Below the pieces are notes generated by a model. That model searched no databases, had not been told where the DNA came from, and saw only the letters and a program-made list of their open reading frames with translations. 64,000 bases of DNA, taken from the NCBI GenBank assembly GCA_964057225.1, contig OZ059896.1, positions 16,802,001 to 16,866,000 of the forward strand, given 5' to 3'. Below are positions 4,201 to 55,246 of this stretch, piece by piece; position 1 is the first letter of the stretch; every line of letters starts with the position of its first letter. The translations under genes were made by a program, and so were the position numbers. Origin of the DNA: Auanema rhodensis. Its lineage: Eukaryota > Animalia > Nematoda.

Positions 4201-7200
4201 GGAAACGGAACAAAGCTCTTCCAGCTGGACAGTAAGCTGAAGTTGGAAGATAAAAATGAAATAGTTACACTGATTACAATCAAATTACCTCCTTTAACAT
4301 TTCCACAGCAATAGTATTTATGATTATTCTGAGAAAAACGACACAAATATCCGGAGGGGCATTTACCATCAGCAGCCATAGCACACTGTCGAGGAGTATT
4401 ATTGCGTGGATCCATAAACGCTTTTTCTCCAGCAGGACAAACACCTAAAAAAATCGGGAAATAGTTAACAGATATACAAAGAATGATAAATATTTAATAC
4501 AGCTATCTGCATATACATACCCATGCTATCAGAGCCACAGCATACATGCTCTTGTGTTAGCGCATTCAGAGTACACGCATAGTTAGCTGGGCAATTGTTT
4601 TGGAGAGCTGTATTGCATAAGAATGGTTTATTGGAATTCGGATCCTGAAATAAATGTTTAAATATATGGTTAAGTTGGATTCTCTAGCCTTATATACGCT
4701 ATCTCCAGCAGAGCATCCAGCTGACATACAGAAATCTTCACATTCAAGTTTAGTGCCAAATGAATTTAGTGAGGTATCGCAACCATTCGATGTATATGAT
4801 GAACAGGATTGTAAGGCCATATTGAAGTAAAATCTGAAATGAAACGATAGTTATGTTGATAGCCCATACTTAGATTTCGTCTCCATACAAAAGCACAACT
4901 GCTGTTTAGCAAACGTAGCTCAGATAATTATTTGAACATAGTTAAACCATTCTGTTTCCCTACTAAATTCGATAATTTTCCAAATGCTAACAAGTTTCGA
5001 AAAATCATATTTTTTAATGTACATTTCATAGGTGGCACACAAAACTTTCTATTAAAGTTTCAATTTTAACGTTTCTTGTTTGTTTTCTAGTTTCTTAACA
5101 TGTGTCAAAGATCAACCTTTCTTACGGATTTTTTGTTATTAAAAAAAAAATCGCATGTGCGATTCATCAAAAAGAGCTCAGATAATATAATTTCAACATA
5201 TTTAGCGGTTTCGGGAGAGCGTTCTGCTTTTTCGTTCATTTGCCAAATCTGCCATGTTTTTAGAAGATCATATCTTATAGTGCAACGTACTTCTTATCCG
5301 TGTTGAACACAATTTTCTAAAAAAATTTTCACTTTTAACGTTTCTTGTCGTTTTCTAGTTTCTTGAAACGTGTTACAGATTGACACTTCATACTAAGTTG
5401 TTGTTATTAAAAAAAATCGCATGTGCGATTCATCAAAAAGAGCTCAGATAATATAATTTCAACATATTTAGCGGTTTCGGGAGTGCGTTCTGCTTTTTCG
5501 TTCATTTGCCAAATCTGCCATGTTTTTAGAAGATCATATCTTATAGTGCAACGTACTTCTTATCCGTGTTGAACACAATTTTCTAAAAAAATTTTCACTT
5601 TTAACGTTTCTTGTTGTTTTCTAGTTTCTTGAAACGTGTTACAGATTGACACTTCATACTAAGTTGTTGTTATTAAAAAAAATCGCATGTGCGATTCATC
5701 AAAAAGAGCTCAGATAATATAATTTCAACATATTTCGACGTTTCAGGGCACCTAGATGCTTCGTTCATTTGCCAAATCTGCCACGTTTTTAGAAGAGGAT
5801 ATCTTATAGTGCAACGTACTTCTTATCCGTGTTGAACACAACTTTCTCTTAAAGTTTCAATTTTAACGTTTCTTGTTGTTTTCTAGTTTCTTGACAGGTG
5901 TCAAAGAAAAACTTCTCTTTTGGAGTTTTCGTTATTAAAAAAATCGCAAGAGCGATTTGTCAAAAAGAGCTCAGATAATATAATTTCAACATAATTAAGC
6001 CTTTCAGAAGCCGTGGTTTTAGAACACATCGTTCATTTGCCAAAAACGTGAAGTTTTTGGAAGATGATATCTTATAGAGCAACGTACTTCTTATCCGTGT
6101 TGAACATAATCGCTAAAAACAGTGCAAAACGCAAACTATTTGAAATACACATCTCTCCCTACTTTAAGATATATAATCCAACGATACAAATGCACAAAAC
6201 TGCCTTTAATAAAATGAAAATTTTTCCAGAAAGATTACTTTATAAAATATAATCAAACAGTAAATTCAAAAAAATGGGCTCAGATATTATACACGTTCTC
6301 CTTCACATTCATTCAGAGGGGTAAACGGCGAGTTAATGTTTTCAATCATCATTTGCCGACATCGTTAAGGTCTTCAATCTTCAACACCCTTGTTATCGCC
6401 GTATCTCTTATGCGTGCTGCTAAAAACGTACAAACAACTATGTGTACAAATTTAATTCACGGTCATTGTAACGTTGTTAATTCAATAATCATGATAGGTC
6501 AAAACTTATCAATTGCTGCTTCAAATGCTTCATGAGGATAACATTTGATTCATCTCAACATAAAAGAATTGAAAAACCAAGTATGAGTCATTAATTAATT
6601 GCTATATTCTTAAGCTGGCTCAGAAACTATACACGTTCTCCTTCAGATTCATTCAGAGGGGTAAACGGCGAGTTAATGTTTTCAATCATCATTTGCCAAA
6701 AGAAAGATAATGTGAAAGACTCAATACAGTAAAACTAGCCGTACATAATATAGGTTTGTATGTGTTCTGAATAAATTTTTTTGACAGAGCAGAAAATTTA
6801 ACATTGTTGACAACATCTTCCAACAAAAGGATATAAAAATTGACATCAGGTAATAGACACGTTCTCTTTCACATTATTCAGATGGGTAAACGGCGAGTTA
6901 ATGTTTTGAATCATCACTTGACAAGTCGTACTTTTAATTTGTCATATATATACACTGATATATAGTTGCATCGTATATTTTTTGAGTGGTATAAATAGGA
7001 ATAAACTAAGAAACGAAACTAACCGTGTTTGCCCACTTCCTGAGCTACACTTAGGAAGCATACCCATCTGTGGTGGTTTCGAACAAATAGAAACCTTTGT
7101 TGGACAACATCTTCTCTGGGTAATACCATTAGCTTCAACTATACTACATTCATAGCCATGAGGACATGGTTCTGTATTTGAACATGTACGAATCTTTGAG

Positions 7201-53861: not shown

Positions 53862-55246
53862 ATTAAACAATATCCGAAGTTCACTTCCGCATCTTCCTCT
53901 TCCTCAGAGTCGTCTGAAGGTATTTGTGCGGATTACTCAAGCAAGGTATACCTAAATTTCTTCATCATTGCTTATTATCTTCTATTAGGGAGCCCGGTCC
54001 ATGACGTCCTCTCTTATGAACGAAGATTTGTGGATAGACAATCTCACCACACGGTTTGGTCATGTATACAACATGGACCAATCATTCGATTTCAACGTTC
54101 TTAAAACGTTTGTTCATTGTCTTTACGTTGTTATTTTAATATTTGTTTCTTTCAGTAGATCGTCCTCAGTCCCTCGTTCACCATCTATTCACATGGCGAT
54201 GTCATCTATCGAGCGTACTCCTAAGTCAACGAGAATTCCAAGCTTGATGACTCAAAGCTGTTCTGCAGGGTATGACAGTGTTTCTCGGTAGCAAATAAAA
54301 GTTGTATTTCTACAGTGTTCATAATGGTGGTCGACTTCGGAAGGACTTGACTTCTGCCTCTGCTCCTGCATGTGGTTCTACTGAGCAACTCTGCGAATCT
54401 TATGTTAGTGTTGCACGAGAAGCGAAAGTATTGCTTGAACGAAGTCGGAAGCGAACACCATTAAGAAGTCGTGTCTACGATTCAAGGTATTTCACATGTT
54501 GTGATATGACTATCAATCCCTGTTTATCTTGCAGATGCATGATGGATACCCGTCCTAGAACATCTATGTCGTGTTCGATGTTTTCCTTGAGACCAAAAGT
54601 GGAACCTCCCCGACTTCTGGCTCGTCCTCGTTGGAATAGATTCGGGGAAGATTCCGTGGAGAAAACTTCAATGGAATTATCAATGTATCGCAGTCATATG
54701 AATACATCCATGGCTGGTAAGAGTTTTGAGAAGTTTTGCTTTATTTTTCATTTATTTTAGCTTGTCGTTCAACATCTGTGCCAATAGAGAATATTGATAA
54801 AAAAGAATCTGTACGTCTTTTCCGTGTGAGAAACACATACGGTAAGTCTAATTTTGGCAATGCTTATCATGTACCTCTTCAATTTTCAGATGGACTACTC
54901 CCACTAACTATGAAACGGCTTGTTGCTTGGTATCGAATCACCTCTGCCAAATGTAGAAACTGCCGGTGTGAACAACGGTTACATAGATTATCTTGTCATA
55001 GTACTCGCTCCAAAACTAGGTAATTTATATTATTCTATTTATAGAATAGACTATAAAAACTGTTTCAGCAATATTGGTGTATCTAAGAAAGGAGTTGTTT
55101 CTCGTAGTCGATGCATCTGCTCATTAGGTCCTAGTTCTTTCTCTCTTACAAAATCAAACTCTCCTTTGCAATATATTTATGATATTGCTGCTATTTTTGC
55201 TGCAATAGCATTCCTACTGAACTTGATACTCAGTTTCTTTTTCTGA
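53862..55246 (+). CDS. Downstream exon block: probable alternative long C-terminus of KLP-11 (Ser/Arg-rich, ending in a hydrophobic helix), or a separate small gene
   Basis: Seven exons with consistent splice phases. The first acceptor (TTGCAG|53862) is phase 2, matching the klp-11 donor at 53507. Ends ..YIYDIAAIFAAIAFLLNLILSFFF*. Confidence 0.65.

Follow-up and report, generated by a model that had tools for sequence, protein, structure and literature searches.

Tandem box C/D-derived units with a U6-type promoter core in one intron of the nematode Auanema rhodensis

Tandem clusters of small nucleolar RNA (snoRNA) genes in plants, trypanosomatids and Euglena have gained new guide specificities on conserved boxes after local duplication, and these clusters are polycistronic and mostly directed at ribosomal RNA (rRNA). 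In Caenorhabditis elegans, promoters of the PSE/UM1 type, named after the proximal sequence element (PSE), have been documented at snoRNA loci; most PSE loci of this species are TATA-less genes of RNA polymerase II (Pol II), and the small-RNA genes that combine a PSE with a TATA box, end in an oligo-T run and are transcribed by RNA polymerase III (Pol III) include those of the stem-bulge RNAs (PMC2527325). In this study, an intron in a 64-kb window of the Auanema rhodensis genome (the window being the whole stretch of DNA that was analyzed) was investigated, in which four tandem units, A to D, each place a promoter core shared with the U6 genes ahead of a body derived from a box C/D snoRNA. 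Because both promoter types have been documented in C. elegans, this kind of gene is already known, and the U6-type layout ahead of a C/D-derived RNA is the variant.

The explanation favored here, which is held with moderate confidence, is that the units form an expressed, constrained and orphan family of C/D-derived RNAs. Their transcription, polymerase, assembly into a ribonucleoprotein (RNP) and function are deduced from sequence features. The evidence comes from the promoters of the U6 and U2 small nuclear RNA (snRNA) genes of the same genome, from an alignment with three canonical box C/D snoRNAs of the same intron (S1 to S3) and from the distribution of differences among the units.

Anatomy of the array and its promoters

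All coordinates are those of the window unless a contig is named, and the array lies on its minus strand. Tandem Repeats Finder (TRF) called a single array at 5054-6110 with a period of 266, 4.0 copies and 87 % matches. The 26-nt 3' scaffold, from the C'-like box through GCTC, has exactly four minus-strand occurrences against 0 expected in shuffles, and the 17-mer CACGGATAAGAAGTACG, which occupies -58 to -42 relative to GGCAA in the units, occurs exactly four times against 0.03 expected. Every unit consists of this upstream 17-mer, TATAAG, a 68-75-nt C/D-like body and a run of five T (T5). Together with a regular-expression parse, these searches reproduced letter for letter the repeated minus-strand formula proposed in a sequence-only reading of the window; the span given there begins at 4916 and also takes in a decayed fifth copy, unit E, which that reading did not describe. 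The features of the intron are as follows, in the order of transcription.

4834-7023, minus strand: host intron, 2190 nt, GT..AG; contigs from three RNA runs of the same species join 4833 to 7024
6843-6922, minus strand: S1, canonical box C/D (GTGATGA ... CTGA), 28S guide; identity to S3 is 87 % and is confined to the RNA body
6617-6697, minus strand: S2, canonical box C/D (ATGATGA ... CTGA); identity to S3 is 96 % and is confined to the RNA body
6400-6416, minus strand: PSE of S3, CACGCATAAGAGATACG, TATA-less, with three mismatches to the 17-mer and at -58 from GGCAA as in U2
6277-6357, minus strand: S3, canonical box C/D; the D' guide pairs over 14 bp with large-subunit (LSU) rRNA; T7 follows
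5845-6112, minus strand: unit D; PSE 6083-6099, TATA 6069-6076; body 5967-6041 (75 nt, 21-nt guide), T5 5962-5966, hairpin and T7 5937-5957
5582-5844, minus strand: unit C; PSE 5815-5831, TATA 5801-5808; body 5706-5773 (68 nt, 14-nt guide), T5 5701-5705, hairpin and T8 5675-5696
5316-5581, minus strand: unit B; PSE 5552-5568, TATA 5538-5545; body 5440-5510 (71 nt, 17-nt guide), T5 5435-5439, hairpin and T8 5409-5430
5050-5315, minus strand: unit A; PSE 5286-5302, TATA 5272-5279; body 5174-5244 (71 nt), T5 5169-5173, hairpin and T10 5141-5164
4905-5049, minus strand: unit E, decayed fifth copy; body 4916-4981, PSE 11/16, no TATA, no T-run

All eight snoRNA-type copies (S1, S2, S3, D, C, B, A, E) are thus contained in one intron, which interrupts a Kunitz domain; the flanking exons match Pfam Kunitz_BPTI and Lustrin_cystein, the host being an expressed multi-Kunitz/lustrin-cysteine gene. 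A BLAST search of the 181-Mb assembly with the unit returned four copies only, all in this intron, and a whole-genome BLAST search with S3 returned no copies of S1-S3 beyond it.

The parse gave guides of 17, 17, 14 and 21 nt in units A, B, C and D, with D'-like boxes CCGA, CCGA, CTGA and CTGA (CUGA as RNA in C and D) and 5-nt loops CCGCT, CCGCT, CGTCG and GGCTT; guides A and B differ by one base. In unit D the final five nucleotides of the guide recur as the loop (GGCTT ... GGCTT), and in units A and B the loop is nearly a copy of the guide end (CGCT ... CCGCT); local duplication, slippage or a second pairing element may lie behind this. The guide of unit C (5746-5759, minus strand) is a near-palindrome, GCAYCTAGRTGC, which can pair with itself over 12 positions when G-U pairs are counted. 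In each of the four units T5 directly adjoins the 3' stem, and T7-T10 forms another T-run about 20 nt further on. About 6 nt past each T5 is a 6-bp hairpin with the invariant stem AATCGC/GCGATT, the 4-nt loop of which differs in unit D; together with T7-T10 it may be a backup terminator or a piece of a longer precursor.

The promoter elements were compared with the U6 and U2 genes of this genome, which lie as follows.

G000:C1:6373656-6376757 onward to about C1:6398300: U6 array
G000:C1:10.96-11.28 Mb: U2 genes, in repeats of about 2.46 kb that include two or three 5S rRNA genes

The U6 genes are arranged head to tail in 226-bp units of at least 170 copies, each with a PSE, a TATA-like box and T8. 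The four units share with these U6 copies, at least 170 in number, a 12-nt core, ACGGATAAGAAG, without mismatch (12/12). In the units this core is followed by 10 nt and then by the TATA octamer TATAAGAT, invariant in all four; in the U6 genes it is likewise followed by 10 nt and then by the TATA-like octamer TATGTAAG. The U2 genes have TATA-less relatives of the 17-mer that start at -58 and match it at 13 of 17 positions. The U6 element also matches at 13/17, and the flanks of the PSE core in the units resemble the U2 version. As judged from these matches, the upstream element of the units is this genome's own snRNA promoter. Genome-wide, with up to two mismatches, the 17-mer was found in the four units only, below the reversed-pattern control, and marked no further snRNA genes. 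A three-mismatch match at 54810-54826 (minus strand), with neither TATA nor small-RNA features downstream, is probably due to chance. The PSE-like 17-mers of S2 and S3 match that of the array at 11/17 and 14/17, at the snRNA distance, and a divergent U2 copy on C3 has another version of the PSE.

Because of the U6-identical core, the U6-like spacing of the TATA box and the T5 terminator, each unit is probably an autonomous U6-type gene transcribed by Pol III. Its start would be expected about 5 nt before GGCAA if the U6 +1 coincides with the beginning of the Rfam match, and 9 nt before GGCAA if the U6 +1 is instead the G that comes first past the TATA spacing. The same genes could alternatively be transcribed by Pol II, like U2 and the nematode PSE-UM1 snoRNA loci, with a capped transcript starting at the G of GGCAA and with TATAAG and T5 as incidental features of AT-rich DNA. 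This alternative concerns only the polymerase, and neither it nor the other explanations weighed below are mutually exclusive. The position of the 17-mer at -58 from GGCAA is exactly that of U2, and S3 carries this element but lacks a TATA box; in C. elegans, most PSE loci are TATA-less Pol II genes (PMC2527325). However, the 13/17 match to the U2 elements does not favor Pol II, since the U6 element is matched equally well, and the 12-nt core is the U6 version. Furthermore, chance would have to account for an invariant octamer exactly at the U6 distance from the core and for a T5 behind every one of the four 3' stems, followed about 20 nt later by the T7-T10 run. We therefore regard transcription by Pol II as unlikely, although it is the strongest of the alternatives.

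Descent of the units and distribution of variation

The D' guide shared by the S-type copies pairs over 14 bp with the LSU sequence GGGTAAACGGCGGG, a pairing equalled by 0-2 of 300 shuffled guides, and served as the positive control of the target search. It matches the conserved LSU stretch GGGUAAACGGCGGG, which is putatively equivalent to the site of human U87; the Rfam covariance model of SNORD87 gave no match to S2 or S3 even at E values up to 10. The RNA bodies of S1-S3, including the guide, are 87-96 % identical, and their flanks can no longer be aligned, a pattern that a working rRNA guide should show. S1 has a distinct and longer terminal stem (UUGUCA/UGUCAA) together with its GTGATGA C box, as expected of an intron-processed copy.

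The units align with S1-S3 through the upstream element, GGCAAATGA (5' stem and C box), D', the C'-like box and the D box with its stem. By this alignment the units are descendants of S-type C/D snoRNAs, in agreement with the sequence-only reading, in which they had been taken for small-RNA genes of the box C/D type. Four changes separate the array from S3: the C box has one inserted base and a U-to-A substitution, the D-side guide has lost 9 nt, leaving 11 nt of A and T only, a TATA box has been gained, and T5 follows immediately after the stem. Unit E, in which the C-box region reads ATTATCGA, has the same inserted C; this insertion therefore predates the array.

Differences were counted in the aligned columns of three independent pairs, A-C, A-D and C-D. 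Across the PSE and TATA, the C-box region, the D' hexamer and the block from C' to T5 there are 1-3 differences in 94 columns, against 28/153 to 40/154 (18-26 %) in the remaining flank and 13/22 to 19/28 (about 60-68 %) in the guide and 5-nt loop. The earlier suggestion that variation is concentrated in the guide and loop is borne out by these figures. Fisher's test gave p = 1e-7 to 5e-5 for promoter and boxes against flanks and p = 4e-5 to 1e-4 for guide and loop against flanks, values that are optimistic because the rate classes were partly defined on the same alignment, which weakens the case for constraint. Between A and D, the PSE and TATA differ at 1 of 40 positions and the adjoining stretch from TATA to GGCAA at 8 of 25. 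Because conserved and diverged blocks alternate so finely, the pattern argues for selection on the promoter and boxes rather than for gene conversion, and unit E shows what unconstrained decay looks like within the same array.

The history of unit B is different. It has no promoter differences and one guide difference from A, and its downstream spacer differs at 1/119 positions from that of C and at 25/122 from that of A. By this mosaic, B is a recombinant: a single unequal exchange between C and A, placed in the identical 3' scaffold, yields precisely these matches, and the locus therefore holds three distinct genes and one recent duplicate rather than an open-ended array. Of the proposal that the whole family was recently amplified, only the part concerning the A/B pair stands; it does not extend to the other units.

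A second alternative, which we rate a little below transcription by Pol II and likewise as doubtful, is that the units are dead or dying duplicates of the S type: with a crippled C box no snoRNP would form, the guide would drift, and the conservation of the rest would reflect youth or gene conversion. The C box is indeed non-canonical in all four units and C' is off consensus, the scans described below found no target for the guides, a decayed fifth copy adjoins the array, and the RNA contigs skip the intron. In addition, A and B are very recent duplicates and the units have recombined. However, gene conversion homogenizes continuous tracts and not alternating blocks of 13-40 nt, and drift cannot make a guide three to four times more different than the neighboring non-functional flank. 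Nor can drift spare the PSE and TATA (1/40) and the boxes (0-2/54) beside a 25-nt stretch with eight differences, or explain why the D' hexamer persists inside the variable block.

Targets of the guides and the case for an orphan family

Targets were sought in rRNA after the rDNA had been located with a conserved LSU probe and bounded with Rfam. The probe matched 659 places, most of them in 6567-bp rDNA units on C8 arranged in blocks of both orientations; the start of C8 has a set spaced at 8394 bp, and a single isolated copy is found at C4:576402. When guides A-D and the constant D guide were scanned against 18S, 5.8S, 28S and U6, 34-99 % of shuffles equalled the best duplexes. Guides A-E, scanned without a shuffle control against the external and internal transcribed spacers, 5S, U2 and both strands of the window, gave only self-antisense top matches; U1, U4, U5, spliced-leader RNA, tRNAs and mRNAs lay outside these scans. 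Over the 181 Mb on both strands, guide D had no other match at up to three mismatches, and the match counts of guides A/B and C equalled those of the reversed-pattern control. Because the guides match no better than chance, the units are orphans among the tested targets, as had been anticipated for rRNA and U6 in the sequence-only reading; because no genome-wide match exceeds chance, the variable segments were not copied from elsewhere in the genome.

These results bear directly on the proposal, also made in that reading, of a repeat-spacer logic like that of CRISPR or TIGR arrays, in which guides would be actively replaced on a fixed scaffold and aimed at mRNA, transposons or DNA. Such a programmable array could account for a guide block saturated with differences on an identical scaffold, for guide lengths that vary among 14, 17 and 21 nt, and for the loop of unit D, a copy of the 5-nt guide end, as a trace of local duplication or slippage. 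However, there are three distinct guides only, and they have neither copy nor complement elsewhere in the genome beyond chance, so that no donor or target was found. Each unit appears to be an independent gene with its own PSE, TATA and terminator, which leaves no common precursor, and associated acquisition machinery is not evident. Furthermore, duplication followed by divergence is a known route of snoRNA family evolution, and the spacer mosaic is explained by ordinary unequal crossing-over, so that no CRISPR/TIGR-like logic is needed; we consider it very improbable. Least credible of all is an ordinary intronic satellite or transposon-internal repeat that resembles snoRNA boxes by chance, since TRF does call a 266-bp tandem repeat but there are only four copies in the genome, all here and hence not those of a dispersed repeat, with a promoter core identical to that of U6 and homology to canonical snoRNAs whose rRNA match is validated.

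The favored explanation, an expressed and constrained orphan family, has to be set against several observations. The three RNA runs consist of mRNA-type contigs that cover the exons and skip the intron, the family is confined to a single locus of one genome, the guides have no target beyond chance, and T-runs such as T5 are frequent in the AT-rich host intron. The C box, the non-canonical character of which had been noted in the sequence-only reading, reads AUGAACGA in all four units instead of RUGAUGA and differs from the parental AUGAUGA by the U-to-A change and the inserted C. The terminal stem is only 3 bp long with one G-U pair (5' GGC with GCU past the D box; GGC/GCC in the parent), and C' is UGUUGA against the consensus UGAUGA, being degenerate in the parent as well. 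In addition, Rfam returned no meaningful family for the units, either at gathering thresholds over the window or at E values up to 10 over 4500-6800, as that reading had suggested searching. All of these count against the family as proposed, and it is above all the C box that speaks against the units being working methylation guides.

Full snoRNP assembly requires stem II of the C/D motif. Both GA dinucleotides of the C box are kept in the units, and a kink-turn with a one-base (C) bulge in stem II is conceivable. The D box CTGA is invariant, and the D' hexamer CYGAAA is retained within the variable block. Single-sequence folds of the predicted RNAs were weak and inconsistent (-2 to -13 kcal/mol) and revealed no common fold beyond the box layout. 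The unit RNAs are most likely orphan RNAs of the snoRNP type, with targets other than rRNA or with a role other than that of a guide.

The following course of events would account for the locus. An rRNA-guide snoRNA gene of the box C/D class, driven by an snRNA-type promoter of its own, would have duplicated in tandem within the intron, with S1-S3 retaining the 28S guide. A younger lineage, comprising D, C, A, later B and the decayed E, would have gained the TATA box, T5 and the C-box insertion and shortened its D-side guide. The primary transcript of each unit would measure about 77-88 nt, run from 5-9 nt before GGCAA into the T-run and be trimmed to a C/D-like RNA of 68-75 nt. Selection would hold the promoter elements and boxes, and the antisense element 5' of D' would diverge to saturation.

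A bolder version goes further than the orphan family favored here and is, in our view, improbable, though less so than a programmable array: the units would be a young, lineage-specific, Pol III-transcribed family of C/D-derived RNAs in which the antisense element is under diversifying selection, the promoter has switched from the TATA-less (Pol II) type to the U6 type, and the guides have been retargeted from rRNA to other cellular or parasitic RNAs. If this were true, new guide specificities would be born on a fixed snoRNP scaffold beside their ancestor in one intron. The 2.2 kb bring together an rRNA-guide ancestor with a TATA-less promoter of the snRNA type, one decayed copy and four descendants that combine U6-type promoters with unrelated guides. 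Should the RNAs prove to be expressed, the locus would be a compact system for changes of polymerase class, guide turnover and orphan C/D roles in nematodes; if the units are silent, it would be a snapshot of snoRNA gene birth and death.

Comparison with known systems

The likeness to CRISPR and TIGR arrays is only visual and lies in the pattern of constant and variable segments: the units form no single precursor, have no donors or targets, comprise three guides, descend from eukaryotic snoRNAs and are repeats that bear promoters. Compared with the tandem snoRNA clusters of plants, trypanosomatids and Euglena, the units are monocistronic and orphan. The mammalian SNORD115 and SNORD116 genes (PMC7038934) are, as here, tandem intronic C/D genes without an rRNA target. 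However, they are processed from introns, one per intron of a non-coding host, in tens of copies, and have canonical boxes and an antisense element that is largely conserved, whereas the present units all lie in one intron, have their own promoters and carry mutually unrelated antisense elements.

The U6 genes of this genome, which are Pol III genes of type 3, share with the units the 12-nt core, the 10-nt gap, the T-run terminator and the tandem layout; they differ in the product, U6 as against a C/D-derived RNA, and in number, at least 170 copies as against four. The nematode snoRNA genes of the PSE/UM1 type, including intronic ones (C. elegans; PMC2527325, PMC1474057), have an snRNA-type element at a fixed upstream distance and are independent of their host, as is the case here, and S3, which is TATA-less with the element at -58, fits this type exactly. 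In C. elegans, the pairing of an immediate T5 with a TATA box placed as in U6 has been described for U6 and the stem-bulge RNAs (UM3) and not for C/D snoRNAs, whereas the units of the array have both.

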